In this document: in pieces, positions 5,889 through 48,385 of the stretch | How the letters are laid out: each line of letters begins with the position of its first letter | Position numbering within the stretch: the stretch's first letter is position 1 | Sequence record: KJ019086.1 | Direction: 5' to 3' (one strand) | DNA length: 64,000 nucleotides | Notes under the pieces: model-generated | What the model was told of the DNA's origin: nothing | What the model saw: only the letters and a program-made list of their open reading frames with translations | Database searches by the model: none | Made by a program: the position numbers and the translations under genes

Positions 5889-6414
5889 ATCATTTTACGG
5901 AGAAATACTCAACTCGGATGCTACTGGGCATCTGTATTCGTATGCCCAAAGTATTCAAGACTGGCAAACCATAAACCAAGACTACATGGGTAAGAAATAC
6001 CAGTCTGTTATGGCTCATAAAGTCCCTAGGGGAAATGAGATTGAGAAGTATGTTGTCAGAACTTTTCTCACATTCAATAAGTTATATTTCAACTACGATT
6101 TAGTAGGAACATTTGAAACACAGATTCTGAAATACAATGTGCATGATGGGTATGATTGGCACTGTGACTATGGTGTGAGTGAGAATCCCAATGCAGTTAG
6201 GAAACTGAGTATGATTATTCAACTCAGTGATATGTGGGACTACAACGGTGCAAATGTATTCCTAAGGGACTGGCACAACCGAGAACACATCCTAAGTAAG
6301 GAGTCTGGGTATGTTACCGTATTTGACTCTAGGTCCCCTCACAGGGTCTCTCCTCTAGCTATCGGAGAACGATACTCACTGGTAGCCTGGGCTCACGGTC
6401 CAGAGTGGAGATAA
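5881..6414 (+). CDS. 2OG-Fe(II) oxygenase
   Basis: YDWHCD, RKLSMIIQLS, HRV and RYSLVAW motifs. Confidence 0.9.
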   Translation: MVESFYGEILNSDATGHLYSYAQSIQDWQTINQDYMGKKYQSVMAHKVPRGNEIEKYVVRTFLTFNKLYFNYDLVGTFETQILKYNVHDGYDWHCDYGVSENPNAVRKLSMIIQLSDMWDYNGANVFLRDWHNREHILSKESGYVTVFDSRSPHRVSPLAIGERYSLVAWAHGPEWR

Positions 6415-6439
6415 ATAAAATACAAAGAAATGGAAACAT

Positions 6440-6754
6440 ATGCTTTCTACACAATATCGTCTTCGCCTTGAGGCTATCTGCCGAAAGATTGCGAATAGTG
6501 AATCTGTGGATTTGAGTGACATGATCTGGGCAGACAAATTGGCAAAGAGCCATACTACTGCTAGAGACTGGTTACAGCAGGCAAGAAGACAATCAGCCCA
6601 TCAAATTGAAGAAGGTACCATAGATGATTTTATGAATAGGATGGGTTTAGGTGATCCCGATCCGTCCAATCATAAGAAGGGATTTGATAGTGCCGATGAT
6701 ATTAAGGACTGGTTTCAACAGGATAAGCCCAAAGACTGGAGACAAAGAGACTAA
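6440..6754 (+). CDS. conserved cyanophage hypothetical protein
   Basis: MLSTQYRLRLEAIC...QQDKPKDWRQRD, a recurrent cyanophage ORF type. Confidence 0.8.
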   Translation: MLSTQYRLRLEAICRKIANSESVDLSDMIWADKLAKSHTTARDWLQQARRQSAHQIEEGTIDDFMNRMGLGDPDPSNHKKGFDSADDIKDWFQQDKPKDWRQRD

Positions 6755-33414: not shown

Positions 33415-33606
33415 ATGATTATGAAAACGAAGAGAGAGCGTCTTGAAGATGTCATTATGGAATATCTAGATGAAGAATACTCGTCTCGACGTATCTACGA
33501 AGAATTCTTATCAGTAATGATGAATGAATGTCAAGGTAGGGAGGAGGCATCTAAGAAAGCCTTAGAACTTAGAGACTTGATGTTAGGTGATAGACCTGTA
33601 TTTTAA
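33415..33606 (+). CDS. hypothetical protein
   Basis: RERLEDVIMEYLDEE...; start adjusted. Confidence 0.65.
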   Translation: MIMKTKRERLEDVIMEYLDEEYSSRRIYEEFLSVMMNECQGREEASKKALELRDLMLGDRPVF

Positions 33607-33624
33607 CAAAGGAGATTATCAATT

Positions 33625-33936
33625 ATGACTAAAGAAGTTAGCGATTTGAAACTCACACGACTTGAGTGTGTGAAGTGTGGCGCCACTTGGATCAATGGTA
33701 ATCATGTATGGAAGACTGGTAATACTGGAAGTGAAACCGATCTAGCTGGGTTAGTTTGCAATAAACTAGGTGATGACGATTGCATCAACCCCCTAAGGGG
33801 TGCTGAGACAGGTGACACTTGGGAACAACGCCTTGGTGACCTGGATACTGGATTCAATGCAAGGAGAGAGCGTCTAGAAGACCAGAGAGCAAGGTTCAAA
33901 GAACAATATGGGGAAGACCCTCACTTTGACGATTGA
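33625..33936 (+). CDS. conserved hypothetical protein (Cys-rich)
   Basis: CVKCGATWING.H.W.TG...DLAGLVCN...CINP. Confidence 0.8.
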   Translation: MTKEVSDLKLTRLECVKCGATWINGNHVWKTGNTGSETDLAGLVCNKLGDDDCINPLRGAETGDTWEQRLGDLDTGFNARRERLEDQRARFKEQYGEDPHFDD

Positions 33937-34004
33937 GGAAGTGGCACACCCCCTAGGCAAACCTATGGGGATGCGTTATAATATGAAGGTAATCAACCAG
34001 AGAG

Positions 34005-34220
34005 ATGACACAGCTTAAAACAAAGTTCCGCAGGTATATCGGTGTTCTCACTGAAGCCGTATCTCGTTCCATCGAGTTAGACTACTCACAACCCAAACTC
34101 TATAAGAAGGTCCGAAGGTTCTATGAGGAACAGGGAGTCTCCTTCACTGGAGACGAGGTAGATGACTACCAAATTGTTATGGATTGTTTAACTGAAGATC
34201 TAGTAAAGGAGCCAGTATGA
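34005..34220 (+). CDS. conserved hypothetical protein
   Basis: Follows a TATAAT box; LYKKVRRFYEEQGV.FTGD. Confidence 0.75.
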   Translation: MTQLKTKFRRYIGVLTEAVSRSIELDYSQPKLYKKVRRFYEEQGVSFTGDEVDDYQIVMDCLTEDLVKEPV

Positions 34221-34453
34221 AGACTATTCTTGAGAGAGAAGGTTTCCGTTTCATTGAGAAAGGTATTATTGAACTCAATGGAATGCCAGACTACCGACTA
34301 CAGAAACAAGATCACTATTCCCAACGATGGAATGATGTTTATCTCTTCGATAACAAGATGCAGTGTCTAACTGCTATGGAAGATATCGAATATTGTAAGT
34401 GGTTGTGTGGAGAACCCTGTTATGTTCGTGATGTTGTTGGTTCCTATTCATAG
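34217..34453 (+). CDS. conserved hypothetical protein
   Basis: GIIELNGMPDYRLQ..D.YS.RW.D.YLFDN.MQC. Confidence 0.8.
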   Translation: MKTILEREGFRFIEKGIIELNGMPDYRLQKQDHYSQRWNDVYLFDNKMQCLTAMEDIEYCKWLCGEPCYVRDVVGSYS

Positions 34454-34684
34454 ATGAGAACTACATCCTTCCTAAGGTATCTTGGAAATACCTTACTAGT
34501 GTTGGGTCATTTCACACTCCTTTGGGGGGATACACAGACCGCCTTGACTATCAAAATCATAGGTGGTCTTTCTTTGTTACCCTTTGCCATCTCCTGGAAG
34601 TTGTGGGATGTTGTGGCACTTGAGTTAATATTTGGAGGTATGGATGTAACCAAGTTCATCCAGTTACTATTCAGCAACTCCTAG
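34454..34684 (+). CDS. small membrane protein
   Basis: Three hydrophobic segments. Confidence 0.7.
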   Translation: MRTTSFLRYLGNTLLVLGHFTLLWGDTQTALTIKIIGGLSLLPFAISWKLWDVVALELIFGGMDVTKFIQLLFSNS

Positions 34685-34733
34685 CACCATAGGGTTTCTT
34701 TATTCCCTTACAAAGATGAAGTGGCGCACCTGA
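34685..34733 (+). ncRNA. candidate wcaG RNA motif (3' part)
   Basis: AGGG/CCCT hairpin whose loop CTTTAT can pair with ATGAAG; GGTTTC...AAAGA...GTGGCG..CCTGA layout as I recall for wcaG; upstream of gmd/wcaG genes. Confidence 0.4.
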
Positions 34734-34762
34734 TTGGCAAACCCAAAAATATGTGTTATACT
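34734..34762 (+). promoter_or_regulatory. promoter TTGGCA-N17-TATACT
   Basis: 34734-34739 and 34757-34762. Confidence 0.7.
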
Positions 34763-34767
34763 GGGTA

Positions 34768-34853
34768 GGTATTGGTAGCGTTTTCAGGGGTGAATAAACT
34801 ACCAATACCAATCTAAACTCATAGAAAACCACTCCTCATGGGGTGGTTTTTTT
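34768..34853 (+). ncRNA. orphan small RNA: 11-bp hairpin plus terminator
   Basis: GGTATTGGTAG/CTACCAATACC stem; AAAACCACTCC/GGGGTGGTTTT terminator; no ORF. Confidence 0.55.
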
Positions 34854-34887
34854 GTGCGCGTATAACTAGTGTAACTTGGGTTACATT

Positions 34888-35184
34888 ATGAAAGCCGACG
34901 CACAACTAGAACACCACGCCAATTGTTGGAATTCTATTCGAAATAATGATAAGGAATACTTTAAGATAGGAGTTGGTGTTTATAAAACTATCAACGCTGA
35001 TAGGGAATACTATATCAATAGTCGTATTGAAACTGATAAGAATAGTGATATATCAGAGATGGATCAAGTGAAAGAAGCCCACTCCAAACACTTAAGTTAT
35101 TTTATTGGATACAAATCAGAAGTAACAGTTGAAGCTATCAGTAGTGATTGGAAATCTACCCTATACCGGGTTACTACCTGCTAG
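34888..35184 (+). CDS. hypothetical protein
   Basis: ORF between the terminator and the gmd promoter. Confidence 0.55.
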
Positions 35185-35216
35185 GGTGTGTTATAATAGA
35201 TGAAATGCATGTTGTG

Positions 35217-36215
35217 ATGAAAGCTTTAATCTCTGGTATAACTGGGCAGGATGGATCCTATCTTGCTGAACTTCTACTGAAGAAGGGGTATGAAGTCCAT
35301 GGTATTATTCGTAGAACCTCCTCGTTTAATACAGGAAGAATCGATCATATCTTCGATCAGTTACACCTCCACTACGGGGATTTGACTGACTCCCTGAACA
35401 TAGTCTCTATCATTAAGGAAGTGGAACCTGATGAGATATACAACCTAGGGGCACAGAGTCATGTGAAAGTATCCTTTGAGGAACCTGAATATACAGCACA
35501 GACTGATGCTCTGGGAACCCTAAGAGTATTGGAGGCAGTTCGTCTCCTAGGTATGACAGATAAGGTTCGTATCTACCAGGCATCCACTAGTGAGTTGTAT
35601 GGGTTGGTACAAGAGACACCCCAGAAAGAAACAACACCTTTCTACCCACGATCTCCATATGGTGTAGCTAAACTCTATGGATATTGGATTGTAAAGAACT
35701 ATCGTGAGAGTTATGGGATGCACGCCAGTAGTGGTATTCTATTCAACCATGAGTCACCACGACGGGGTGAGACTTTCGTAACCCGTAAGATTACTAGGGG
35801 ACTATCCCGTATTAGTACAGGACTACAGGATTGTCTATACCTAGGTAATCTAAACTCAAGACGAGATTGGGGTCATGCTGAAGACTATGTGGAGGCTATG
35901 TGGTTGATGTTACAACAGGAAACTCCTGATGACTATGTGATTGCCACAGGTAAAGAGTATTCAGTGAAGGACTTTGTAGAGGCATCTGCTGAATACTTTG
36001 GTATGAAGATTGAGTGGCAGGGTGAAGGATTGGATGAAGTGGGTATAGATAGATTTACAAAGAAGGTTGTCGTTCGTGTGAGTGACAAATACTTCAGACC
36101 AGCAGAGGTTGAAACTCTCTGGGGTGATCCCACTAAGGCTAAAGAGGTATTGGGTTGGAAACCTAATCATACCTTTGCTTCCCTAGTAGAAGATATGTGT
36201 ATCTACGGTCAGTAA
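35217..36215 (+). CDS. gmd: GDP-mannose 4,6-dehydratase
   Basis: [43 protein letters not shown] and RDWGHA. Confidence 0.97.
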
Positions 36216-36217
36216 TT

Positions 36218-37144
36218 ATGGAAAAAGGTGCAACGGTAGCAGTATTTGGTTCGGGTGGATTGGCTGGAAGTGCCATCACCAGGGCACTCAGGTGTTCTTT
36301 TGGGGGGTATAAGATTCTTACTCCTAGGAGTAAAGAACTAGACCTAAGAGAACAAGCAGATGTTCGTAGTTGGTTTAAGCATAACAAAGTTGATTATGTA
36401 TTCTTAGCTGCTGCCTTAGTTGGTGGTATCATGGCTAACAAGACTAGAAAGGCAGAGTTCTTACATGACAATCTAATGATGCAGTGTAATGTAATTGACT
36501 CTGCATACTATAGTGGAGTGAAGAAACTTCTATTCCTAGGTACTTCTTGTATCTATCCAGCAGGAAGGCACCATCCACTAGTGGAACATGAACTACTCAC
36601 AGGACTATTAGAACCAACCAATGACGCATACGCAATCGCAAAGATCGCAGGGATCAAACAATGTGACTTCTACCGAGAACAATATGGATTTGATGCTATC
36701 TCTATCATGCCTCCTAATCTATATGGTCCTGGAGATAATTTCAATGAGGGATCAGGACATGTCCTCGCCTCACTAATGAATAGGTTTCACCTAGCGAAGG
36801 AAGCAGGTGCATCTAGAGTTGAATGTTGGGGTGATGGATCACCTATGAGAGAGTTTCTATATGTGGATGACTTAGCAGATGCTTCCTTATACTTTATGAA
36901 TAGTTATAGTGAGTCTGGGCACATTAATACTGGGACTGGTAGGGATGTAACTATCAAACAACTAGCGGAGACTATTGCTGATGTAGTTGGATACAAAGGT
37001 GAGATAGGTTGGGATACAACTAAACCCAACGGAAACCCAAGGAAACTACTTGACAGCAGTAGGGCAAACCTGTTAGGATGGGAACCCAAGGTTAAATTTG
37101 AAGACGGAATCAAACTCACATACAACTGGTATCTAGCACAATGA
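36218..37144 (+). CDS. fcl: GDP-4-keto-sugar epimerase/reductase (Fcl/WcaG; possibly ColC)
   Basis: GSGGLAG, LAAALVGGI, GTSCIYP, YAIAKIAG, NLYGPGDNF and REFLYVDD. Confidence 0.92.
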   Translation: MEKGATVAVFGSGGLAGSAITRALRCSFGGYKILTPRSKELDLREQADVRSWFKHNKVDYVFLAAALVGGIMANKTRKAEFLHDNLMMQCNVIDSAYYSGVKKLLFLGTSCIYPAGRHHPLVEHELLTGLLEPTNDAYAIAKIAGIKQCDFYREQYGFDAISIMPPNLYGPGDNFNEGSGHVLASLMNRFHLAKEAGASRVECWGDGSPMREFLYVDDLADASLYFMNSYSESGHINTGTGRDVTIKQLAETIADVVGYKGEIGWDTTKPNGNPRKLLDSSRANLLGWEPKVKFEDGIKLTYNWYLAQ

Positions 37145-38334
37145 CAAAGATTACAAATGGATATACGTGGCCTCTTATGAAGGACACTGTGACCAAGAGA
37201 GATAGGTTGAGGATGGCAAAGTTTATCCTCACCAGTGATAGACTAACACAAGGTAAAGAAGTTCGTAAGTTTGAGGAGCAGTGGAGTGAGTGGCTTGGAG
37301 TTAAACATTCTCTTTTTGTTAGCAGTGGCAGTACCGCTAACCTACTTCTTGTGTCTGCTTGGAAGGAATTATACGAGATCCCAGACCAGTCGAAAGTAAT
37401 TGTACCTGCTTGTACTTGGGTAACTAATGTTGCTCCTATCATCCAGTGTGGTTTGACTCCAATCTTTTGTGACATCAACTTAGAAGACTACTCCTTTGAT
37501 CTGGATAAACTACAGGATATTCGTGATGAATATCACGATGACATCAGAGGTATCTTTGTTACTCACCTCCTAGGATTTCCTGCTAATGTGGAAAAGTTTC
37601 GTGATGTTTTCCCCGACGCTCATATTCTAGAAGATGTATGTGAGAGTCACGGAGCAGTCCTCCCTAGTGGTGATAAGGCGGGAACCTTTGATGTTGGTGG
37701 CACATTTAGTTTCTACTTTGGGCACCACATGACTACCATTGAAGGTGGTATGGTGAGTACTAATGATCCAGAACTCTATGATCTAATGAGAATGAAGCGT
37801 TCTCACGGGTTAGCGAGAGAATCACTATACTTTGAAACATACAAAGAGAAGTATCCTGATGTAAATCCACAGTTTCTCTTCGTTACTGAGGGATATAACT
37901 TCCGTAATACTGATCTAGCTGCTGTATTAGGACAGTCTCAACTGAAGAGACTAGACAGTATGATTGGGATTCGTAACAGGAACTATGAGTTATACCAACA
38001 ATTACTAAAGAAACACGAACATGACCTTACACATGAGTATGGTGGTTCTTTCTATATCCCCTCCACACAGGGGGATGTAAGTAGTTTCTGTTTTCCATTT
38101 GTAGTTGATAATATGCACTGCTATCTTAAGTTAAAAGAACTTCTAGAAGAATACTATGTTGAGTATCGACCTATTGTGAGTGGTAACCTCCTACGACAAC
38201 CATTCTTGAGAGAATATTCTGCTGAGTGTCCCAAGGCAGATATAGCCCATGAAAAGGGACTATATATTGGGAATAATCACTTTGTAGATGAGTCTAACTT
38301 TCACATGCTAGATGAGATTTTGAGCCAACTTTGA
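37141..38334 (+). CDS. colD: PLP-dependent GDP-4-keto-6-deoxy-D-mannose 3-dehydratase (ColD-type, DegT family)
   Basis: VSSGSTAN, EDVCESHG, TFSFYFGHHMTTIEGG with His at the Lys position; RSHG and no Fe-S Cys cluster. Confidence 0.75.
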   Translation: MTKITNGYTWPLMKDTVTKRDRLRMAKFILTSDRLTQGKEVRKFEEQWSEWLGVKHSLFVSSGSTANLLLVSAWKELYEIPDQSKVIVPACTWVTNVAPIIQCGLTPIFCDINLEDYSFDLDKLQDIRDEYHDDIRGIFVTHLLGFPANVEKFRDVFPDAHILEDVCESHGAVLPSGDKAGTFDVGGTFSFYFGHHMTTIEGGMVSTNDPELYDLMRMKRSHGLARESLYFETYKEKYPDVNPQFLFVTEGYNFRNTDLAAVLGQSQLKRLDSMIGIRNRNYELYQQLLKKHEHDLTHEYGGSFYIPSTQGDVSSFCFPFVVDNMHCYLKLKELLEEYYVEYRPIVSGNLLRQPFLREYSAECPKADIAHEKGLYIGNNHFVDESNFHMLDEILSQL

Positions 38335-38335
38335 T

Positions 38336-39130
38336 ATGACATTTTCATTTAATCATATGGGCAACTTGGGGCATCTGGGAAACCAGATGTTTCAGTATGC
38401 CGCACTCATTGGTATGGGGGCTAAGCATGGGAGGAGTATTTGTATCCCCCATAAACAAAGTTTTGGGCAATCATACTACCAGGATCTTCGTAGTAATATC
38501 TACGATGCTTTCAACCTCTCACCCAATGGTGTAGGTATCAGTAGGTTCCCCACAGTTCAGGAAGGTAGTTTCCACTTTGATGAAAACTTATTTGAGAACC
38601 CACCAGAGGAGAACTGTAACCTCTATGGATTCTTCCAGAGTGAAAAGTGGTTCTCACATATCAAAGAAGGTATTAAGAAAGAGTTCACTCTAAAGGATGA
38701 ATACCGGGAAGTGGCACAACTGATGAGAGAACAACTCTCTGGTCAGGTTGTTGCTATTCATGTTCGTAGAACTGACTACCTATCCAATCCAAACCACGGA
38801 GCATTGGGTTTAGATTACTATGAGAAGGCACTGGAGTTGGTTCCTAATAACCTTACAGTAGTTGTATTCACTGATGATCCAGAGTGGGCTAAAGAACAAC
38901 CACTCTTTCCAGATGATAGGTTCTTTGTATCAGAGACAGACTGTCCCTATACAGACCTTGCTCTTATGAGTATGTGTGATTATCATATTATTGCCAACAG
39001 TTCATACTCTTGGTGGGGTGCATACTTATCTGATAGTAAGAAAGTAATTGCTCCTAAACAGTGGTTTGGGGAACCACTTAAAACAAATAACCTGAAAGAT
39101 CTTTATTGTGATGGGTGGGTGAAACTATGA
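38336..39130 (+). CDS. GT11 alpha-1,2-fucosyl/colitosyltransferase
   Basis: G.LGNQMFQYA, GFFQSEKWF, HVRRTDY, YYEKA, FTDDPEW and ANSSYSWWGA. Confidence 0.93.
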   Translation: MTFSFNHMGNLGHLGNQMFQYAALIGMGAKHGRSICIPHKQSFGQSYYQDLRSNIYDAFNLSPNGVGISRFPTVQEGSFHFDENLFENPPEENCNLYGFFQSEKWFSHIKEGIKKEFTLKDEYREVAQLMREQLSGQVVAIHVRRTDYLSNPNHGALGLDYYEKALELVPNNLTVVVFTDDPEWAKEQPLFPDDRFFVSETDCPYTDLALMSMCDYHIIANSSYSWWGAYLSDSKKVIAPKQWFGEPLKTNNLKDLYCDGWVKL

Positions 39131-39750
39131 GTAACTTTGCAAGTGCTAAACAGTTTATCAAGAATGGTATTGATACACAACAGGAGTCTATCTCTGGTGG
39201 TGGCAGCACTATGGCTTCCACAGTTGCCTTCAGATACTTCCTACCAAAGTATATCAAACAGTATGGTATTGAGAGTATCTTAGACATTGGGTGTGGTGAC
39301 TGGCATTGGATGTCTACTATCAGAGAAGAGTTTCCTGATGTAGACTATGAGGGATGGGATGCCTCTGAGGATATGATTAATCCCATGACTGAGAAGTATG
39401 GAACAGAGAATACCAGGTTTGAGGTAAAGGATATCATTGATAACAAGTATCCCAAAGTGGATTTGGTTATCGCTCGTGATGTTCTATTCCACCTCAAAGA
39501 AGATTACCTAAAGAAGGTTCTCAAGAATATCAGTAAGGCAGGTGTGAAGTATCTACTAGCAACTACCTTCCCAGGTTTACCTAAGAACGAAGAACTCACT
39601 CCTAAGAAATATGACGGTTGGGGATTCAGACCAATCAATCTGGATATCGAGCCTTATAATATGAAAGATTATTGTATCAATGATTTCAAGGAAACCACAG
39701 CCCCCAACAGGGGGTATCATCGTCATGTGTATTTGTATGAGGTAAAATGA
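39127..39750 (+). CDS. class I SAM-dependent methyltransferase
   Basis: SGGGS..., ILDIGCGD, DLVIARDVLFHL and RPINL..EP.N. Confidence 0.85.
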   Translation: MSNFASAKQFIKNGIDTQQESISGGGSTMASTVAFRYFLPKYIKQYGIESILDIGCGDWHWMSTIREEFPDVDYEGWDASEDMINPMTEKYGTENTRFEVKDIIDNKYPKVDLVIARDVLFHLKEDYLKKVLKNISKAGVKYLLATTFPGLPKNEELTPKKYDGWGFRPINLDIEPYNMKDYCINDFKETTAPNRGYHRHVYLYEVK

Positions 39751-39899
39751 AGATCGAAATTGAACTCTCTAAAGATGTAGAATACAAAGGAGAGAAACTA
39801 GGTGAGTATATCTGGAACCTAGAAGAGGGAATTAATCATGTTACTGGTTTTGGTGATTCACTTGAGGAATGTTTTAAGGAAATTGTGAGGTTTAGATGA
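39747..39899 (+). CDS. small hypothetical protein (50 aa)
   Basis: ATGA overlaps at both ends; YIWNLEEG...DSLEECF. Confidence 0.6.
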   Translation: MKIEIELSKDVEYKGEKLGEYIWNLEEGINHVTGFGDSLEECFKEIVRFR

Positions 39900-40627
39900 A
39901 GAAAGTAGCTATTATCTTTATTGGAACAGGTAGATACCTAGAGTTTCTACCAAAGTATTATGAACAGGCAGAAGCAAACCTCTTCCCTGACAGACCCAAA
40001 CACTACTATGTGTTTACTGATGGTGACTTAGGTAATGAACTACCTGACAATGTAACTGTATACGAACAGGAACATCTCCAATGGCCATATATCACCCTCT
40101 ATCGTTTTGGTATTATCCAGAAACACTTAGAGGAGATTGAGAAAGAGTGTGGTTTCCTACTCTTTATGGACGCTGACACACAGGTAGTATCCCCTGTATC
40201 GTTCGATGAAGTATTCAAGAAGGGAAAACCCTATACAGGTGTTCACCACCCCTGTCACGCCCTGAATATGCCACCACACAATGAGTTTCCTGGTAGTCTA
40301 GAAACTAATACAGCATCTAAGGCAGCATGTAAACCTGGTGATGACTTCTCTGTCTATTGGCAAGGTTGTGTCTGGGGTGGAAACATCAAGGGTGCTCGTA
40401 AGATTATCGATACTCTCCACCATAGAACTAAACAGGACGAGGAGAATGGTATTGTTGCTCTATGGCATGATGAAAGTCATATCAATAGATACTTCCTTGA
40501 TAATAAAGATAAGGTGAATACCCTATCACCTAGTTTCGCATACCCAGAGTCCTTCACTGAGTATATGGAAGACTATGAACCTAAGATTGTACACCTAGCA
40601 AAAGAGAATTCTAAGTATCAGGTATGA
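39896..40627 (+). CDS. GT6 glycosyltransferase (ABO/alpha-1,3-Gal(NAc)T family)
   Basis: FIGTGRY, YYVFTD, WP..TL.RF, FMDAD, YWQGCVWGG and WHDESHINRY. Confidence 0.92.
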   Translation: MKKVAIIFIGTGRYLEFLPKYYEQAEANLFPDRPKHYYVFTDGDLGNELPDNVTVYEQEHLQWPYITLYRFGIIQKHLEEIEKECGFLLFMDADTQVVSPVSFDEVFKKGKPYTGVHHPCHALNMPPHNEFPGSLETNTASKAACKPGDDFSVYWQGCVWGGNIKGARKIIDTLHHRTKQDEENGIVALWHDESHINRYFLDNKDKVNTLSPSFAYPESFTEYMEDYEPKIVHLAKENSKYQV

Positions 40628-41247
40628 GTTACTTCACAGATTATGACAACGAATTCACAGTATTCGAGGCACCAAAGAACGGGGGAACTACTCTCCGTCT
40701 TTGGATATACTACGCAGGAACAGGGGAGTTAGTAAAGTCAGCGGAGTCTGAATACTACGCTGGCACTGGAGAAACATACAAACAACTCCAAGAGTGGGGT
40801 TATGTGAATGGGGAATACGAGAACCCCAAGACCCAGATGGTATGTATCAAGAGAGACCCTGTAGATAGGTTTGTAAGTGCCTTCTATGATAAGGTAATCA
40901 AAGAGGGGAGAATCAAAGTAACCATCGATGAGTTTCTCTCAAACTATGAAGAGATACTTGATAAGTCTACCCTCAAGATGAATGATGGTAAGACTAACTT
41001 CATGAAGTTTCACTTTGAGTCACAGACATATCACTTCGGTAAAGATAAAGATCTATATCATAAGGTCTTTGATATCTCAGAGGTTGGTACTGGTCTGAAG
41101 AAGTATCTGGAGGGTAAGTGGAATATAGAACTACCTGATGTCCATGCTAGAAATAGTGGTGGTGGTCGGAAGTTTGATCTCTCCAGGGGACAACTGAATA
41201 AGGTGAAGGAAATCTACACACAGGACTATTATAATGGCTGGTACTGA
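40624..41247 (+). CDS. sulfotransferase (Sulfotransfer_2-like)
   Basis: PKNGGTT (5'-PSB), RDPVDRFVSAF (3'-PB) and HF..Q. Confidence 0.8.
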   Translation: MSYFTDYDNEFTVFEAPKNGGTTLRLWIYYAGTGELVKSAESEYYAGTGETYKQLQEWGYVNGEYENPKTQMVCIKRDPVDRFVSAFYDKVIKEGRIKVTIDEFLSNYEEILDKSTLKMNDGKTNFMKFHFESQTYHFGKDKDLYHKVFDISEVGTGLKKYLEGKWNIELPDVHARNSGGGRKFDLSRGQLNKVKEIYTQDYYNGWY

Positions 41248-42019
41248 AGGATATATCCTGATAGGTATTGGTGATAGGTATCTACAGATGACAGAGAACC
41301 TCACTAAAACTCTAAAGAAACATGGAGACAATAGAGGATCCCTAACTATCACAAGATCAGATAATAGGGAACTCTATAGTGAGTGTAACACTGAGTTTGA
41401 GAGGAATGGAACTCTACCTAAGATTACCTTAGACAGATACTTACCTTTTGATCACAATATATTCCTAGATGCTGATATGTTATGTGTAGGTGATACCCAA
41501 CATGTATGGGATCTATTCAGGAGTAGTGATCAGTTTGTTCAACAGGTAGGATGTACTCAGAGAGATCCTGCTTTCCACGCTCACCAGTATGAGAGTGAGT
41601 TGGGTTTTGAGATTCCTAGAGTCCATGGTGGTTGTATCTACATCAATAGAGAGAAACTAGACCCAGGGTTCTTTCCCTATATGAGAGAGTGTTTCCTAAA
41701 CTATAAACAAATATTTCATAATAGTGGTCTAACCTATAAGAATAGTAGACCAGATCAACCACTATACGCTCTAGCAAATGGTATGTGGGGATTCAAACCT
41801 GTGGATCTATACACTAACCCTATCATGACTATTGTGAATGATAGTACCCCACCCCCACTAGATAGTGTGTTCTTCAATAAGAAGAGGGGTCCTAAGTTAG
41901 ATACTCCTGTTCCCTTTGTTCATGTATTCCGTGGAGAAGAGGGTATGTCTAAGGGTTATACTAGAGGTGACCAGAAGATGTTGTTGTCCCATTATGATTA
42001 CTACCTGAACTATGAATAA
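41234..42019 (+). CDS. GT-A glycosyltransferase (GT8-like)
   Basis: K...D.YLPFD..IFLDAD, HGG..Y and DQP..A. Confidence 0.65.
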   Translation: MAGTEGYILIGIGDRYLQMTENLTKTLKKHGDNRGSLTITRSDNRELYSECNTEFERNGTLPKITLDRYLPFDHNIFLDADMLCVGDTQHVWDLFRSSDQFVQQVGCTQRDPAFHAHQYESELGFEIPRVHGGCIYINREKLDPGFFPYMRECFLNYKQIFHNSGLTYKNSRPDQPLYALANGMWGFKPVDLYTNPIMTIVNDSTPPPLDSVFFNKKRGPKLDTPVPFVHVFRGEEGMSKGYTRGDQKMLLSHYDYYLNYE

Positions 42020-42800
42020 AACTATATGGATGTGTTGGTTCCAGGGTTGGGATAAGGCACCAGAGATTACAGAGAAGTGTTTAGAGTCCTGGAAACACTA
42101 CAATAGTGATTGGGATATTGTTCTACTAGATGAATCCAACTACAAGGATTACATCTCCATTGATAAAGAACTACCAGGACTGAAGACAAACTATATCTCA
42201 CTGGGTGATATCCTTCGTCTCTTTCTACTAAAAGAGCATGGTGGAGTATGGGCAGATGCAACTATCTTCTGCAACAAACCAGTGGATTGGGTTTTGGATT
42301 ATGAGGATTCTTTCATCTTCACCAGGAAGGATAAGATGATTGCCTCTTGGTTTGTTGCTGCTCAGAAAGATTCCCATGTTGTAGATGTATGGTATAATAA
42401 GATGTTAGAGTTCTGGAAGTATCGTATGGAAAATACAGATACTTTCGAGCAACAATATGGTTGGATACACGCTTTGTTCCGTCAGTCCTACGCTCAGGAT
42501 AAGGGGTTCAGGGATATTGTAGATAGTATGGATAAGATTGATTGCATGAGTGATGGTCAATCTAGAGGTAAGGGTCCGCACTTCTTTGCACCCTACAGTA
42601 AATACTTCTACAACCCTATCAGTGACACGATAAAGAATCGTATAGACTCTAAAGTTGATCCACTATATAAGTTGTCTTACAAGGCAAACACAGACTGGAG
42701 AAGTCCAGAGAACAGGGGTATCCACCCAGCAGACCAAAAGATTATGTTGGAATATCCAACTAATAGTGAACTACATTATCTACTCAACACATTAAAATGA
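42012..42800 (+). CDS. capsular polysaccharide synthesis-type glycosyltransferase (GT32-like)
   Basis: KTIWMCWFQG, D.LRL.LLKEHGGVWADAT. Confidence 0.85.
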   Translation: MNKTIWMCWFQGWDKAPEITEKCLESWKHYNSDWDIVLLDESNYKDYISIDKELPGLKTNYISLGDILRLFLLKEHGGVWADATIFCNKPVDWVLDYEDSFIFTRKDKMIASWFVAAQKDSHVVDVWYNKMLEFWKYRMENTDTFEQQYGWIHALFRQSYAQDKGFRDIVDSMDKIDCMSDGQSRGKGPHFFAPYSKYFYNPISDTIKNRIDSKVDPLYKLSYKANTDWRSPENRGIHPADQKIMLEYPTNSELHYLLNTLK

Positions 42801-43702
42801 CAAATAAATCATTGGTTACCGGTGGCGCGGGTTTCATCGGGTCACATATTGTGGACCGACTTATTACACTAGGACATCAAGTCGTAGTGATTGACAATGA
42901 ATCCTCTGATGGTCATGATGAATACCATTGGAACAGAAGCGGACAAGTACAAAACCATAAGGCAGACATTCGTGACTACGATGCAATCAAACACTTGTTT
43001 GGTGGAGTCAATAATGTTTTTCACCTTGCCGCTAAAGCATCAGTACAGGCGTCAGTAGATAACCCCCTACCAACTATTGCCACACAGGTAATGGGAACCG
43101 CCAATGTATTGGAGGCAGCACGACAATCTGGTGTGAGTAAGTTTGTATATTCCTCTACTAGTGCTTGTTATGGTAACAACAACCCCATTCCTAATGTAGA
43201 AACGATGAGAGAAGATCCTCTCAACGCCTATGCTATTGGTAAGTTATCTGGGGAACAACTAGTTCGTGCCTATCACTACCTCTATGGTATGAAGACGGTG
43301 GCATTCCGTTATACCAATGTATATGGGGAGAGGGCAAGACATGTTGGACATTACGCTCCTGCTGTTAGTAAGTTTCTAAAGATGAGAGCACAGGGAGAAC
43401 CTCTAACTATCTTTGGTGATGGTGCCCAACGCCGAGACTTTATTCATGTATCTGATGTAGTCAACGCTAACTGCTGTATTACCTATGAGGAACTAGAGCA
43501 GTGGGGTGAGACCTACAACATTGGTTATGGTAAGAACTGGAGTATCCAAGAGATTGCAGACTCTATCAGTCAGGAACAGATTCACCTATCTGCTCGTACT
43601 GGTGAGATGCGTGAGACGCTTGCTGATATTGGGAAGGCAAAGGCAGAGTTGATGTGGAAACCAAAGACTGACATCATGGATTGGATTAGGGTACAACTCT
43701 GA
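42797..43702 (+). CDS. NAD-dependent epimerase/dehydratase (extended SDR, GalE-like)
   Basis: VTGGAGFIGSH, HLAA..SV..S, YAIGK, RYTNVYG and RDFIHVSD. Confidence 0.92.
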   Translation: MTNKSLVTGGAGFIGSHIVDRLITLGHQVVVIDNESSDGHDEYHWNRSGQVQNHKADIRDYDAIKHLFGGVNNVFHLAAKASVQASVDNPLPTIATQVMGTANVLEAARQSGVSKFVYSSTSACYGNNNPIPNVETMREDPLNAYAIGKLSGEQLVRAYHYLYGMKTVAFRYTNVYGERARHVGHYAPAVSKFLKMRAQGEPLTIFGDGAQRRDFIHVSDVVNANCCITYEELEQWGETYNIGYGKNWSIQEIADSISQEQIHLSARTGEMRETLADIGKAKAELMWKPKTDIMDWIRVQL

Positions 43703-44319
43703 TGCCAGTATTTCAGAAGGACAACAAGAAAGTTCTATTCATCCATGTTCCCAAGACTGCAGGAAGTTCTGTGAATAAACTCTTTGCGAATAATGGATAT
43801 GAAATGTCCTACTATTCTGAGAGTTCTAAAGATCTATACAATGGATTATGTGGACCACAACATCTGGACTCACTTCTATTGGAAGATGAGTTCCAAGATT
43901 TCTCTCAGTTTGATTATATCTTCTCTATCTTCAGAGACCCAGTAGACAGACATCTATCTGAGTTCACCTGGGCACCCTGGGGACTAATGGGTAGAAACAT
44001 CTACACACCAGAAAGATTTGATGAGTGGTGTCCTAAGATATTCAGAGCGTATCAGGACTCACCATATAGGATGGATAATCACATTAGACCTCAACATGAG
44101 TTCTATGTCAATGGATGTGATGTGTATGACTATGAAAATATCAATACACTCACAGAGAAACTATGTGATAAAATAGGTCTAGATAATAAAGAGATGCCAT
44201 ATGAAAGGTCTTCACGATATGATAGTGAGGATTATGTCATCTATGAAGATACTTACAATTGTATTACTGAATTTTACAAAGGAGACTATCAATGGCAAAA
44301 GGATTCAGTCCTGTTGTGA
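43702..44319 (+). CDS. sulfotransferase (Sulfotransfer_2-like)
   Basis: FIHVPKTAGSS, RDPVDR.LSEF and NH.RPQ.EF. Confidence 0.85.
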   Translation: MPVFQKDNKKVLFIHVPKTAGSSVNKLFANNGYEMSYYSESSKDLYNGLCGPQHLDSLLLEDEFQDFSQFDYIFSIFRDPVDRHLSEFTWAPWGLMGRNIYTPERFDEWCPKIFRAYQDSPYRMDNHIRPQHEFYVNGCDVYDYENINTLTEKLCDKIGLDNKEMPYERSSRYDSEDYVIYEDTYNCITEFYKGDYQWQKDSVLL

Positions 44320-45170
44320 CTAAGGATAAGAACAAGTCCCAGTTCAAACTACAGGGTGTTCCTAGGATTTACTACATCAGTTTAGATGATCATGCTCATC
44401 GTCAAGACTATATGGAGTCCCAGTTTGAAGACTGGGGCATCACTAACTTCGAAAGAATCTCTGCTCATGATGGTAGAGGTGATAATGATCTGAGTGATAT
44501 TCTCAAAGGATCTTATCCAAAGATGATGAGTTCTGGTGAGGTTGGTTGTGTAACCTCTCACCTAAAGGCACTAAAACACTGGTTAGATACTACAGAGGGT
44601 GAAGAGTTTCTCCTTATGATGGAGGATGATTGTGATATCTCCACTGCTGCCCACTGGGGTTTCTCCTGGAGGGAGTTTATTGGGAATATTCCATCCCATG
44701 TAGATTGTGTTCAGTTAGCAGTTATCAACCCATCAGAACTACATATCAAACTCCATATCAGGTTTGTGAATGATTTCTCCACTGCCTCATACCTAATCCG
44801 TAGATCACACGCAGAGAAGTTAGTTAGACTCTATTGTAGGGGTGATAAGTATAAACTTGATAGTGATATCAAACCCAGAGCAGTTGCTGATGATCTTATC
44901 TACAACTCTGGTGTGACTCTTGCTATGCCTCTATTTGCCTTCAAGATTGCACTAGGTTCCAGTATCCATGATGTCCATATCAATACCTTCCACAAGAGTA
45001 GTCATGATGGTATCTGGGAGTTTTGGAAGAAAACAGCACCAACTATTGAGAACTGGAAACCATTCTTCAACTATGATGCCTATCTGGGAACCCTACCACC
45101 CAATGTTGTGGTTCAACAATGGCAGCAAAAACAGGAATCCAAAGCAAAAGATTCAGGGGCTTCGCAATAG
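44292..45170 (+). CDS. GT25-family glycosyltransferase
   Basis: IYYISLD....R...M, ERISAHDGR, GEVGC..SH..A and MMEDD. Confidence 0.85.
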   Translation: MAKGFSPVVTKDKNKSQFKLQGVPRIYYISLDDHAHRQDYMESQFEDWGITNFERISAHDGRGDNDLSDILKGSYPKMMSSGEVGCVTSHLKALKHWLDTTEGEEFLLMMEDDCDISTAAHWGFSWREFIGNIPSHVDCVQLAVINPSELHIKLHIRFVNDFSTASYLIRRSHAEKLVRLYCRGDKYKLDSDIKPRAVADDLIYNSGVTLAMPLFAFKIALGSSIHDVHINTFHKSSHDGIWEFWKKTAPTIENWKPFFNYDAYLGTLPPNVVVQQWQQKQESKAKDSGASQ

Positions 45171-45214
45171 AACATATATATGTTATAATATTTACATTCA
45201 CCCATGAGGTTATT

Positions 45215-45334
45215 ATGAAATTTGGTTTTACCCCCGAAGCAGAAATCCTAAACGCTCGTTTGGCAATGTTGGGATTCGTTATCGCCGTAGGCACTTACTT
45301 GACCACAGGTCAGATTATTCCAGGAGTTCTTTGA
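45215..45334 (+). CDS. hli: high-light-inducible protein
   Basis: [19 protein letters not shown]...TGQIIPG. Confidence 0.93.
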
Positions 45335-45627
45335 TGGCGTTTTCTGTAACACTTAGATCACCTACTGGTGAAGATAAAGTTGTAACAGTGGAGGGAGATC
45401 AATACATCCTAGATGCCGCAGAGGAAGCGGGTGTAGATCTCCCATATTCATGTAGAGCTGGTGCTTGTTCATCCTGTGCAGGTAAGATTGTATCTGGAAA
45501 GGTGAATCAAGAAGACCAGTCATTCTTAGATGATGATCAGATCGAAGCAGGTTTCGCACTCTTATGTGTAGCTTATGCCGAATCTGATTGTGTGATTGAG
45601 ACGGAAAAAGAGGAAACCCTTTACTGA
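45331..45627 (+). CDS. petF: plant-type [2Fe-2S] ferredoxin
   Basis: [15 protein letters not shown]...LLCVAY. Confidence 0.97.
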
Positions 45628-45632
45628 GACTG

Positions 45633-45782
45633 ATGTCTAATCCAAACGCTCTATATGAAGATATGGAGAAACTGAATGCCCTCTACGAAGAACTTTGTTG
45701 GGGGCATAACGATGAACTACAATTTTCCCATGACGGGGAGAGCATTATTATTACCAATAAAACCCAGGAGAAACAAAAATGA
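45633..45782 (+). CDS. conserved small hypothetical protein (49 aa)
   Basis: MSNPNALYEDMEKLNALYEELCW; ATGA overlap with the next hli. Confidence 0.7.
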   Translation: MSNPNALYEDMEKLNALYEELCWGHNDELQFSHDGESIIITNKTQEKQK

Positions 45783-45988
45783 CAGTAACAACTGAAGACG
45801 GCGGCCGCACAAACATGTACGCCACTGAACCCACTATGTTTATTGATCCTTCTTACACTGAGAAGTATGGTTTAGAAACACACGCGGAACGAGCTGAAAC
45901 AGCAAACGGGCGTTGGGCAATGATTGGATTTGTTTCTGGTATTGTATCCTATGTTATTACTGGTAACTTCTTCTTTGGTGTTATCTAA
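45779..45988 (+). CDS. hli: high-light-inducible protein (long N-terminus type)
   Basis: MTVTTEDGGRTNMYATEP...AETANGRWAMIGF. Confidence 0.93.
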   Translation: MTVTTEDGGRTNMYATEPTMFIDPSYTEKYGLETHAERAETANGRWAMIGFVSGIVSYVITGNFFFGVI

Positions 45989-45995
45989 TATTAGA

Positions 45996-46022
45996 AGGAG
46001 GGTTTGATACCCTCCTTTTTTT
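45996..46022 (+). terminator. intrinsic terminator
   Basis: GGAGGGT/ACCCTCC plus T7. Confidence 0.8.
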
Positions 46023-46029
46023 GTGCTCC

Positions 46030-46037
46030 TATAAATA
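46030..46037 (+). promoter_or_regulatory. T4 late promoter TATAAATA
   Basis: Exact motif upstream of the tail fibre gene. Confidence 0.75.
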
Positions 46038-46069
46038 CCTTTTAGGCACCCACACACCTTCGTATCAAA

Positions 46070-48385
46070 ATGGCATTTAAGATTAATGGCGTAGTACGCA
46101 TTGATAATAGTGGCAACGGTTTTCTGGGAATTGTAACCGCTACCGACGCTAATATCACAGGAGTTCTCACTGCCACTGAGGTGGATGCGAAAGTATCATC
46201 TAAGGCAATAACTGAACAAACAGATGGAACCGTAGATGATGTAACTGGTGCAGATGAACTATTACTATTAGATGCCGAGACTGGTGGATTACTAAGAGTA
46301 TCAATAGATGAGTTCGTGCAGGGTTCAGGCATTGGAACTCTAGTAACGGACTTTGATAACTTAACTGTTACTGGTATCACAACCGTTGCCACCCTCAAAG
46401 GTATTGGATCTAATAACATCAGTGTAGGGAGCACACTTTCCTTTGCTGATGGTACAGAGATCATCATGGGTGACTCTGGTGACTTCAGTATTCATCATGA
46501 TGGTGACCATACTTACCTAGATGAGACGGGGCAGGGTAATCTAAAACTCCGTACAAATAACTTTAGAGTAACAAATATAGCAGAAACAAAACCAGCTATT
46601 ACAGCACAGGTTACTTCTGGTGTTGAGTTGTATTTTGATGGTAATAAGAAGATAGAAACTACAAATACTGGTGTTCTTGTGAGTGGTATGCTCACTGCTG
46701 ATAGATTAAGATCAGGTGATATTGCTGCTAGAAATGTAATCACACTGGGTATTACCACTATCCAAGATCATTTGGAAGTGAATGATAGTACTGGTTCTGG
46801 TACGGAATATAATCTTAATGTTAAGACTAATGGTAGTTCTACCTTTGGTGTCTTAGGTAATGGAAATATTCTACTTGGAAACAGTTCCGGTGCTCCATTC
46901 ATGGCGACGAATGATCACCACGCAACTTCCAAGAAATATGTAGATGACGCCATCGCTGATGCTCCTAGCGGTGCTGCGGCTTGGGGTACTGTTGCCGCAA
47001 ACAACAGTGGTGGTGCTAGTAGTATTACTTTACTGGGTGGGATGAATGTAGCAAGTGTCACAGCTGGCACATCAAATGCAAAAGGAAATTTCGTGGTTAC
47101 ATTTGCCACTCCAATGCCTGATGCAAACTATTCAGTAACCGCTAGTTATAATAACGCTAATGTTAACACATATGGGGATATTAGTGTAGGTTCTAAAACA
47201 GCAAGTAGTTTTGAGGTTCAAACTTTTGAATCATCAAATCTGCCTGACTGGCAGGGGTTTGGATTTGTCGTCTTCGCAACCAATGCCTTCCCACCAACAG
47301 GCGGCACCGGCACAGATAGCTGGGCAGCTGTAGATCAAACTATTGTTAATGGTGCTTGTAATGTACCGGCAAGTTTTAACGTTGCTTCAGTAACTAGAAC
47401 TGGACTGGGCCTATATGACGTGGTGTTTACAACGCCGATGCCTACTGATAAATACAGCGTTGTGGGTAGCATTACCCGAGACACATTTTCTAATTTCTGT
47501 ACTTCTAATAGGTCGGCTACTGGCTTTACAGTAAAGAACACCTATCAGAATCGCGATAACGGTGCTACTCAGTATGCAGACAACCCTTTCTCCTTCACCG
47601 TCAACGCCACCAACGCAACGCTACCTGAAACTATTACAACGGATCAGTTTACCTCTGCGTTTAATGCTCCTACCTTCAAAAACATTCTCATCAATGGAAA
47701 TCTGACAATTAATCAACGTAATGTTAATATTACATCTGTTTCTGCCGGTGAATATGGTGAAGATCGTTGGAAAAAGACATTAGGTGGGATGACGCAGATT
47801 GTTGAAGATGGTAATTATCTACCAAGTTCTTCTTACACTTTATCTGGAACAGGTATTACTACAACTACAGCAAACTCACCTGCTTCTGGTGACTGGGACA
47901 TCTCAACAACCTTTGGTGATATTCCTATTACTGCTCGTTCTATCCAACTTGAATATGGCAACGTAGCCTCAGCGTTTGACTTGAGACCGGTTGGGGTGGA
48001 GCTGAGTTTGTGTCATCGTTATTTTTATAGAATAATAAGGTCCGTCAACAGCACTCCTTTTACTATTAAATCTAACAGTAACTCAAACGACATTCCCGCT
48101 GTAGGCTCGATCGAGTGTTCTTACAGTGTAGTTTTTCCAGCCATAATGAGAACCCAACCTACTGGCTCAAATTACAGTAACAACGGAGCAAATAACTATT
48201 TGGCAATTCCAGGATATAGGGCTATTACTAACTCTTTTCTGGCAAGCGATGTAAGTTTTTCATACGCATCCTCTGAAGCCGCAGTAATTTTAGTGGATAC
48301 GACCTTAGGGAGCATCGGAGTAGTTCAAGGAGCTGCGTTCCCGCTAGAGGCGGCTTTTAGTTATGACATCGACGCCGAACTTTAA
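46070..48385 (+). CDS. tail fibre-like protein
   Basis: GIVT/GITT repeats; two AWG...NVASVT...V.F.TPMP...YSV domains; KNILING...INQR C-terminal domain; late promoter. Confidence 0.8.
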   Translation: MAFKINGVVRIDNSGNGFLGIVTATDANITGVLTATEVDAKVSSKAITEQTDGTVDDVTGADELLLLDAETGGLLRVSIDEFVQGSGIGTLVTDFDNLTVTGITTVATLKGIGSNNISVGSTLSFADGTEIIMGDSGDFSIHHDGDHTYLDETGQGNLKLRTNNFRVTNIAETKPAITAQVTSGVELYFDGNKKIETTNTGVLVSGMLTADRLRSGDIAARNVITLGITTIQDHLEVNDSTGSGTEYNLNVKTNGSSTFGVLGNGNILLGNSSGAPFMATNDHHATSKKYVDDAIADAPSGAAAWGTVAANNSGGASSITLLGGMNVASVTAGTSNAKGNFVVTFATPMPDANYSVTASYNNANVNTYGDISVGSKTASSFEVQTFESSNLPDWQGFGFVVFATNAFPPTGGTGTDSWAAVDQTIVNGACNVPASFNVASVTRTGLGLYDVVFTTPMPTDKYSVVGSITRDTFSNFCTSNRSATGFTVKNTYQNRDNGATQYADNPFSFTVNATNATLPETITTDQFTSAFNAPTFKNILINGNLTINQRNVNITSVSAGEYGEDRWKKTLGGMTQIVEDGNYLPSSSYTLSGTGITTTTANSPASGDWDISTTFGDIPITARSIQLEYGNVASAFDLRPVGVELSLCHRYFYRIIRSVNSTPFTIKSNSNSNDIPAVGSIECSYSVVFPAIMRTQPTGSNYSNNGANNYLAIPGYRAITNSFLASDVSFSYASSEAAVILVDTTLGSIGVVQGAAFPLEAAFSYDIDAEL

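Follow-up and report, generated by a model that had tools for sequence, protein, structure and literature searches.

Known Systems and the Cyanophage Locus

In Escherichia coli O86, the blood-group-B O-antigen is built by WbnK, a glycosyltransferase of family GT11, and WbnI, one of family GT6, which add α1,2-fucose and then α1,3-galactose to the same galactose and are encoded by neighboring genes in a cluster with a Gmd/Fcl supply. We take WbnI to belong to the bacterial NxN, metal-independent group. Here we analyze a GT11 and a GT6 gene at positions 38336-40627 (2,292 nucleotides, nt) of a window of sequence record KJ019086.1, the window being the whole stretch of DNA under study (64,000 nt). 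The 2,292 nt are 100% identical to Synechococcus phage ACG-2014f isolate Syn7803US17 (KJ019086.1, Kyanoviridae); the other listed ACG-2014f isolates are 98.2-98.9% identical over this stretch, and 45 records cover at least 80% of it. GenBank already names the products of KJ019086.1 ‘glycosyltransferase family 11’ and ‘glycosyltransferase family 6.’ Both genes are intact and on the plus strand, and they belong to an operon-like array; the original prediction had placed them in one operon. Its analogy to WbnK/WbnI is sound: both pairs combine the same CAZy families and are predicted to act in the same order. Unlike the O86 pair, the phage GT6 has a DAD motif and no C-terminal membrane-binding domain, and the phage gene set includes a ColD homologue (colitose probably replaces fucose), lies in a lytic virus and comes without Wzx/Wzy.

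The locus shares with E. coli O55 (Gmd, ColD/WbdK, ColC and the α1,2-colitosyltransferase WbgN, which we take to be a GT11 member) the succession of Gmd, an Fcl-like protein, ColD and an α1,2-transferase. To our knowledge, O55 has no GT6 step, which would make a B-type branch with colitose a new glycan. Among viruses, a cyanophage clade of GT6 enzymes with a DxD motif is said to have been described by Brew et al. in 2010 (in JBC, the Journal of Biological Chemistry). Thiyagarajan et al. (2012; PMC3516806) described the clade as abundant in marine metagenomes and similar to PaGT6 of Parachlamydia, which is a GalNAc transferase. The GT6 proteins of phage P-SSM2 and Parachlamydia resemble that of ACG-2014f in size (about 230-245 amino acids, aa), in their DxD motif and in having no BHB domain. 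P-SSM2 also has a syntenic island (GT11 … methyltransferase - GT6 … epimerase - GT25 - hli).

We consider it rather probable that the ACG-2014f genes form a histo-blood-group-type glycan module within the lipopolysaccharide (LPS) island of a lytic cyanomyophage, with a B-type product and an acceptor at the host surface. From the gene identities, residue mapping, synteny and clade structure reported below we infer the sugars, linkages and target as follows. Gmd, the Fcl/ColC-like protein and ColD would supply GDP-L-colitose, or GDP-fucose if ColD is bypassed. GT11 would place this 6-deoxyhexose in α1,2 linkage on a terminal β-galactose, and GT6, a putatively soluble, retaining enzyme that depends on metal through its DAD motif, would attach galactose from UDP-Gal in α1,3 linkage to that same residue. 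Gal-α1-3(Col/Fuc-α1-2)Gal-β-, a blood-group-B-like branched epitope, would result, and the neighboring methyl- and sulfotransferases may decorate it further. Because all enzymes lack membrane segments, this chemistry presumably takes place in the cytoplasm of the infected cell. A lipid-linked precursor of a host surface polysaccharide is the most likely acceptor, and the cell surface would then be changed during infection.

The GT6 and GT11 Proteins

The GT6 protein (243 aa) matches PF03414 with 75.2 bits (cutoff 25, E 5.3e-21). Its best solved relative by phmmer is BoGT6a of Bacteroides ovatus (4ayj; Table 1), followed by human GTA/GTB (E ~1e-17). An AlphaFold model based on 43 sequences (pLDDT 94.3) superimposes on BoGT6a with a TM-score of 0.82-0.88 and on GTA/GTB with a TMq of 0.80-0.85, and the top Foldseek matches are all GT6 (TM 0.80-0.88). 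The phage enzyme thus shares the GT-A fold with human GTB and BoGT6a and conserves the UDP, galactose and acceptor contacts as well as the catalytic Glu, at only 23% identity to GTB and about 32% to BoGT6a; it differs from them in having no stem or transmembrane region.

The residues were mapped by HMMER alignments and the residue lists of Thiyagarajan et al. (2012; PMC3516806). I9, T11, T67 and R70 correspond to the UDP/sugar contacts I8, T10, T70 and R73 of BoGT6a. The metal site is D92-A-D94, equivalent to D211-V-D213 of GTA, where the metal-independent BoGT6a has N95-A-N97. S134 takes the place of T245 (BoGT6a T134) in the acceptor site, W190-H-D-E193 that of W300-H-D-E303 with the catalytic Glu (GTA E303, BoGT6a E192), and K236 that of K346 (BoGT6a K231), about seven residues before the end of the protein. 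The residues I9, T11, T67, R70, D92/D94, H118, Y154, W190-H-D-E193 and K236 all match residues of BoGT6a or GTA. The motifs FMDAD (residues 90-94, 40163-40177) and WHDESH (residues 190-195, 40463-40480) are present as originally quoted, and so is the donor segment discussed below.

Three acceptor positions, A1, A2 and A7, bear on the substrate. A1 is H118, which equals H233 of GTA and H122 of BoGT6a; this His is common to the phage enzyme, GTA/GTB and BoGT6a and fits a 2'-fucosylated acceptor. A2 (codon 235) is C120, in a position with Gly in GTA, Ser in GTB and Trp in α1,3-galactosyltransferase (α3GT). A7 is H233, equivalent to A343 in GTA, I228 in BoGT6a and W356 in α3GT. Since A1 is His and neither A2 nor A7 is Trp, the acceptor site is predicted to be of the H-antigen type. 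The protein has the full catalytic apparatus and a DxD metal site. An acceptor site with His-A7, a residue that no characterized enzyme has in this position, would presumably accommodate fucose or colitose.

In an alignment of the window GT6 with its 120 closest database proteins (53-98% identity), all 121 sequences share D92-A-D94, H118, C120, Q156-G157-C158, W160, W190HDESH, H233 and K236. The invariant DxD, the length of 243 aa and the lack of a C-terminal BHB domain place the protein in the metal-dependent, minimal-domain subgroup of GT6. Compared with a sister strain, the gene has 22 synonymous and three non-synonymous codon differences, which indicates purifying selection.

The GT11 protein (264 aa) matches PF01531 with 98.3 bits (cutoff 23.9). 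It contains LGNQMFQYA (38375-38401), HVRRTDY (38759-38779), FTDD (38867-38878) and SSYSWWGAYL (38999-39028), which we take to be the GT11 signature motifs; the Pfam score above threshold and the conserved motifs, including HxRRxD, make it a member of CAZy family GT11. A search for solved-structure relatives of this protein returned only spurious matches to tetratricopeptide (TPR) repeats. Synechococcus phage S-CAM7 has two GT11 paralogues that are 64 and 61% identical to the window protein (L005:8001-8798 and L006:8178-8969). One follows Gmd-Fcl-ColD, the other stands on its own next to a tRNA cluster, and an adjacent GT6 was seen for neither.

Coupling of GT11 and GT6

A GT6 of the ACG-2014f clade is present in 40 phage or viral loci, 37 of them with at least 900 nt of upstream sequence. 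In 32 of these 37, no more than 60 nt separate the end of GT11 from the start of GT6, and in 35 GT11 lies within 2 kb. In every listed isolate that has GT6 and positions in both gene tables, GT11 is found upstream on the same strand. Many loci show a compact Gmd-Fcl-GT11-GT6 order, others Gmd-Fcl-ColD-GT11-GT6; the former reads, by predicted functions, as a complete ‘H then B’ cassette. Phage records with GT11 outnumber those with GT6 (103 versus 72).

The pair might act on unrelated substrates, with GT6 adding a plain α-Gal cap to unfucosylated galactose as α3GT does. This would agree with the arrangement in ACG-2014f, one of the few loci with an insertion between the two genes (a methyltransferase gene and a 50-aa open reading frame, ORF), and with two related loci that have GT6 and no GT11 detected in 1.1-1.3 kb of upstream sequence. 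We nevertheless regard it as very improbable, given the direct adjacency in 32 of 37 loci and the acceptor residues of GT6 (His at A1, Trp at neither A2 nor A7). The uncoupled state can be seen in cellular genomes. In a survey of the 80 best GT6 loci, with one genome per prokaryotic species, GT11 lies within 5 kb in 41 of the 73 loci with His at A1, whereas the six Gln-A1/Phe-A7 loci, from Acinetobacter, Psychrobacter and Moraxella, all lack such a neighbor. Loci L104, L107, L118, L120, L137 and L138 (Moraxella, Acinetobacter, Psychrobacter and unassigned metagenome-assembled genomes, MAGs) combine NxN, Gln-A1 and Phe-A7 with a TGA triplet, have no GT11 within 5 kb and look like fucose-independent, α3GT-type transferases.

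PaGT6, the only assayed enzyme of the DxD minimal-domain clade, points in the same direction. It requires Mn2+ or Mg2+ and uses only 2'-fucosylated acceptors: the H trisaccharide and 2'-fucosyllactose are substrates, LacNAc is not (Thiyagarajan et al., 2012; PMC3516806). The GT11 synteny, the contrast between His-A1 and Gln/Phe enzymes in genomes and the acceptor requirement of PaGT6 strongly support a functional coupling of GT11 and GT6, as predicted from their sequences. The idea of a coupled, blood-group-like pair is well supported, with adjacency in 32 of 37 loci, H-antigen-type acceptor residues and Gmd-Fcl often upstream.

Donor Pocket of GT6

The donor-selecting segment YWQGCVWGG (residues 154-162) aligns column for column with YYMGAFFGG of a GTB-type chain. 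Q156-G157-C158 correspond to codons 266-268 (M266-G267-A268 in GTB, AGG in BoGT6a), V159 to F269 and W160 to F270. At three of the four sites where human A and B transferases differ (235, 266 and 268), the phage enzyme has Cys, Gln and Cys.

Yamamoto et al. (2014; Sci Rep 4:6601, PMC5377540) introduced every motif that they found at codons 266-268 into the human A transferase and rated how strongly HeLa cells made the A and B antigens. With QGC, the rating was ‘-’ for A and ‘+++++’ for B; QGA likewise conferred B activity, QGG both activities and AGG that of A. The authors also count QGC as a motif of bacterial ‘B gene’ sequences. Any residue larger than Gly in position 268 disfavors the N-acetyl group, in agreement with the structural literature (PMC5377540; PMC3516806). 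Q156-G157-C158 is thus a triplet assigned to B in an experimental code table, and Gln 266 with a residue larger than Gly at 268 follows the Gal-type logic of GTB (MGA) and α3GT (HAA). In the cellular survey, 12 of the 80 loci have QGC and five more have QAC, QSC or QGS; the QGC-type motif occurs in both DxD and NxN backbones. As QGC is B-specific in the human backbone, is found throughout the phage clade and is also present in cellular GT6, YWQGCVWGG is best read as an ordinary, predicted UDP-Gal (B-type) pocket. The original prediction had called the pocket unusual and the donor non-standard. We rejected this view, since QGC appears in the 2014 code table and in many cellular GT6 genes, and is invariant in the 121 clade sequences.

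We think it unlikely, though somewhat less so than the uncoupled α-Gal cap, that GT6 uses a donor other than UDP-Gal or UDP-GalNAc, such as UDP-Glc or a rarer UDP-sugar. C120, Q156 and C158, at three of the four A/B-distinguishing positions, are residues of no characterized enzyme; the clade-invariant C120 (235), W160 (270) and H233 (A7) occur in no characterized GT6, which makes UDP-Glc or another donor conceivable. The B specificity of QGC, moreover, is known from the graft into human GTA and not from an enzyme of the clade. NCBIfam NF041524 carries the title ‘family 6 glucosyltransferase,’ which is a name only. These points stand against the strong and exclusive Gal activity that QGC confers on human GTA (QGA behaves alike), the agreement of positions 266 and 268 with the Gal-type enzymes and the frequency of QGC in prokaryotic GT6.

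Two GT6 Clades in Cyanophages

The GT6 proteins of P-SSM2 and ACG-2014f are 30% identical. YYAGGFNGG (AGG, the A/GalNAc type) together with Ala at A7 is found in P-SSM2 and in each of 30 relatives sampled, as opposed to QGC, Cys-235 and His-A7 in ACG-2014f. In a maximum-likelihood tree, sequences with Q-x-[C/S] and His-A7 form one clade (36 rows, support 98/95) that is sister to the P-SSM2 group. The isolates in which QGC was read directly, ACG-2014f, S-PRM1, S-CAM9, Bellamy and B3, are all Synechococcus phages, and the isolate with AGG, P-SSM2, is a Prochlorococcus phage. Two IMG/VR contigs, L045 (177 kb) and L051 (120 kb), contain tandem GT6 genes at 5306-6720, downstream of Gmd-Fcl-ColD-GT11. 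The first gene encodes YYAGGFNGG with Ala-A7 and the second YWQGSLWGG with His-A7. Since both contigs carry the two types in tandem, which would otherwise be hard to explain, this argues that the AGG and QGS types are non-redundant and do different jobs.

Cellular loci with at least 50% identity to the window GT6 were found only on short MAG contigs, which we suspect to be mis-binned phage DNA. Of the best 80 cellular GT6 loci, none comes from a marine Synechococcus or Prochlorococcus genome. Loci L065, L066, L069 and L072, from Spongiihabitans, Saprospiraceae, Woesearchaeota and Acidobacteriota MAGs, encode proteins of 600-700 aa in which a phage-like GT6 domain (DxD, QGC, His-A7) is fused to other sequence.

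Fucose or Colitose

The product of the gene directly upstream of GT11, annotated as hypothetical in GenBank, has a DegT-fold match to 2gms (Table 1). The HH of ‘SFYFGHHMTTIEGG’ aligns with the His-His of E. coli O55 ColD, in the place where the aminotransferases of this fold have the Lys that binds pyridoxal phosphate (PLP). This His is presumably residue 188, the catalytic one of ColD. A DegT-fold protein with His instead of the PLP-binding Lys is what identifies a ColD homologue. The Fcl-like protein scores 419.6 bits, below the NCBIfam equivalog cutoff of 500 for GDP-fucose synthase, as might be expected of a ColC.

The Gmd-Fcl-ColD-GT11 module recurs in S-CAM7, where no GT6 is adjacent, and in several IMG/VR contigs; ColD is located directly upstream of GT11 in ACG-2014f, S-CAM7, L010/L011, L022 and L045. 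The closest relatives of the window GT6, in L010 and L011 (65% identity), are also located behind ColD, which is mildly reassuring as to whether GT6 would tolerate a colitosylated acceptor. The characterized colitosyltransferase WbgN of E. coli O55 uses GDP-colitose and tolerates GDP-fucose well, so the phage GT11 need not be specialized. Pairwise identity to the window enzymes did not separate a colitose-specific GT11/ColC subclade. GT11 proteins adjacent to ColD show 46-72% identity, versus 43-48% for those without ColD, and are not uniformly closer to each other. In the ColD loci L022 and L045, GT11 is 46-48% and Fcl 52-53% identical to the window enzymes; in loci without ColD the ranges are 43-48% and 49-59%.

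The idea that colitose takes the place of fucose was put forward originally, and it is plausible in view of a ColD homologue with the active-site His just upstream of GT11 and of the WbgN precedent. We favor colitose as the likely 6-deoxyhexose in ACG-2014f.

Target of the Glycan and Transcription of the Island

The LPS clusters near hli03 have been proposed to alter the host surface and thereby block other phages (Sullivan et al., 2005, 2010). The gene families of the island (GT25, Caps_synth, GT11, GT6) are typical of O-antigen, lipooligosaccharide (LOS), LPS and capsule synthesis. In ACG-2014f, P-SSM2, S-CAM7 and many IMG/VR loci, the island ends with GT25, a candidate for adding the β-Gal that GT11 and GT6 would later decorate. 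None of the 12 island proteins has a membrane-spanning segment (Kyte-Doolittle maximum <1.6, 19-residue window). All enzymes being soluble and Wzx/Wzy/WaaL-type genes being absent from the island, they would have to act in the cytoplasm on an acceptor provided by the host or the phage. A precursor of a host surface glycan is the most likely target, and this is the weakest part of our account.

Several observations count against a B-type, possibly colitose-bearing glycan made for the host surface. The island has no gene for an initiating transferase, flippase, polymerase or ligase. GT6 genes of the same clade mostly occur without ColD, and tolerance of the 3-deoxy sugar colitose on the acceptor is assumed. 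In ACG-2014f and S-CAM7, the island ends about 0.9 kb before a tail fiber gene, a proximity that leaves room for glycosylation of the virion. As to expression in nature, three marine RNA-seq libraries from two studies (X15-X17) yielded short contigs that match the ColD, GT11, GT6 and sulfotransferase genes at 95-99% identity; with DNA carry-over possible, they are no more than a hint of transcription. The part of the window from 37141 to 41247 is fully covered in a marine DNA metagenome.

The neighboring fiber gene is also the starting point for an alternative in which the enzymes glycosylate proteins of the phage particle (tail fibers or capsid) and shield or tune the virion. Soluble enzymes in the cytoplasm, where virions assemble, and an island with no Wzx/Wzy/WaaL-type genes would suit this role. 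The transcription signals argue otherwise. An intrinsic terminator and a separate T4-type late promoter stand between the island and the fiber gene (Table 1), and no T4-type late-promoter motif is found in 20190-46029. The glycan island thus seems not to be driven by late promoters, which speaks mildly against its co-expression with structural genes. In the region 33500-46500, sigma-70-type promoter-like sites are not enriched (34 found versus 36.5 expected), and terminator-like sites are weakly enriched (15 versus 7.4); only the terminator and the late-promoter motif before the fiber gene look meaningful. The island families typical of LPS and capsule synthesis and the use of the bacterial GT6/GT11 pair in O-antigens likewise disfavor virion glycosylation, which we hold to be unlikely, if less so than a different sugar donor. 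The surface polysaccharide of the host remains our preferred target.

Novelty and Implications

As originally worded, the prediction adds little, because the genes were annotated, the clade described and the donor motif decoded. What we add is the near-obligate GT11-to-GT6 synteny, a predicted split of cyanophage GT6 into AGG (A-type, in the Prochlorococcus phage) and QGC (B-type, in Synechococcus phages) with tandem carriers of both, a clade-specific signature of Cys-235 and His-A7, and the link to ColD, from which a B antigen analogue with colitose is predicted. A limited literature search found none of these.

Taken further, cyanophages may have an A/B-type polymorphism, with the B type in Synechococcus phages, the A type in Prochlorococcus phages and both in some, and ACG-2014f may re-label the infected cell surface with Gal-α1-3[Col-α1-2]Gal, possibly methylated or sulfated. 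We put this forward tentatively, as a scenario that is more doubtful than the module itself. If true, very abundant ocean viruses would write blood-group-like sugar codes on their target, and the re-labeled surface would decide which competing phages or grazers still recognize an infected cell. It would also open the LPS islands of cyanophages, long unexplained, to concrete assays, provide small, soluble, metal-dependent α1,3-Gal and GalNAc transferases and an α1,2-colitosyltransferase for glycan synthesis, and bear on the proposal that the vertebrate ABO family arose from prokaryotes or phages.

Organization of the Island

The glycan island (35217-45170) consists of co-directional genes on the plus strand with stop/start overlaps and is therefore operon-like (Table 1). 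Gmd, the Fcl/ColC-like gene, ColD, GT11, the methyltransferase gene, the 50-aa ORF and GT6 are followed by a sulfotransferase-like gene, a GT8-like gene, a GT32/Caps_synth gene, an epimerase gene, a second sulfotransferase-like gene and GT25. Further downstream are hli and ferredoxin genes, a strong terminator and the tail fiber gene with its late promoter.

Table 1. Features of the ACG-2014f glycan island and its downstream border (positions in the window; SAM, S-adenosylmethionine).
Feature	Position	Strand	Evidence or remark
GDP-mannose 4,6-dehydratase (Gmd)	35217..36215	+	TIGR01472 equivalog, 555 bits (cutoff 415); so annotated in KJ019086.1
GDP-fucose synthase-like epimerase/reductase (Fcl or ColC)	36218..37144	+	NCBIfam GDPFucSynFcl, 419.6 bits; between Gmd and ColD homologue
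ColD-like GDP-4-keto-6-deoxymannose 3-dehydratase	37141..38334	+	PDB 2gms/3gr9, E 8.4e-51; GenBank ‘hypothetical’
GT11, predicted α1,2-fucosyl/colitosyltransferase	38336..39130	+	PF01531, E 6.2e-28; four motifs
SAM-dependent methyltransferase between GT11 and GT6	39127..39750	+	Methyltransf_12/25/31, E 1e-10 to 1e-8
50-aa ORF, no Pfam match	39747..39899	+	annotated coding sequence in KJ019086.1
GT6, DxD-type minimal catalytic domain, predicted α1,3-galactosyltransferase (B-type)	39896..40627	+	PF03414; BoGT6a, E 4.5e-28
GT6 donor-selecting segment YWQGCVWGG	40355..40381	+	alignment to GTB-type chain; QGC = GTA/GTB codons 266-268
Sulfotransferase-like protein after GT6	40624..41247	+	PF03567, E 1.3e-6; Sulfotransfer_2-like
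GT8-like 261-aa protein, unannotated	41234-42019		FLDADM (DxD) motif; weak GT8 match, E 0.016
Second Sulfotransfer_2-like gene	43702-44319		E 1.3e-7
GT25 (LPS β-galactosyltransferase family)	44292..45170	+	PF01755, E 2.2e-11; candidate β-Gal acceptor maker
Intrinsic terminator	45993-46019		11-bp stem and T run
T4-type late-promoter motif TATAAATA	46030-46037		about 30 nt before tail fiber gene
Tail fiber gene	46070-48385

The GT8-like protein is probably a further, divergent glycosyltransferase. Methyltransferase genes flank GT6 in P-SSM2 and Bellamy too. The ACG-2014f island has two sulfotransferase-like genes, and the syntenic island of S-CAM7 includes an adenylylsulfate kinase gene, which suggests that the phage glycan may be sulfated. 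In L010 and L011, GT6 is followed by a homologue that is 41% identical to the sulfotransferase-like protein after GT6 in the window.

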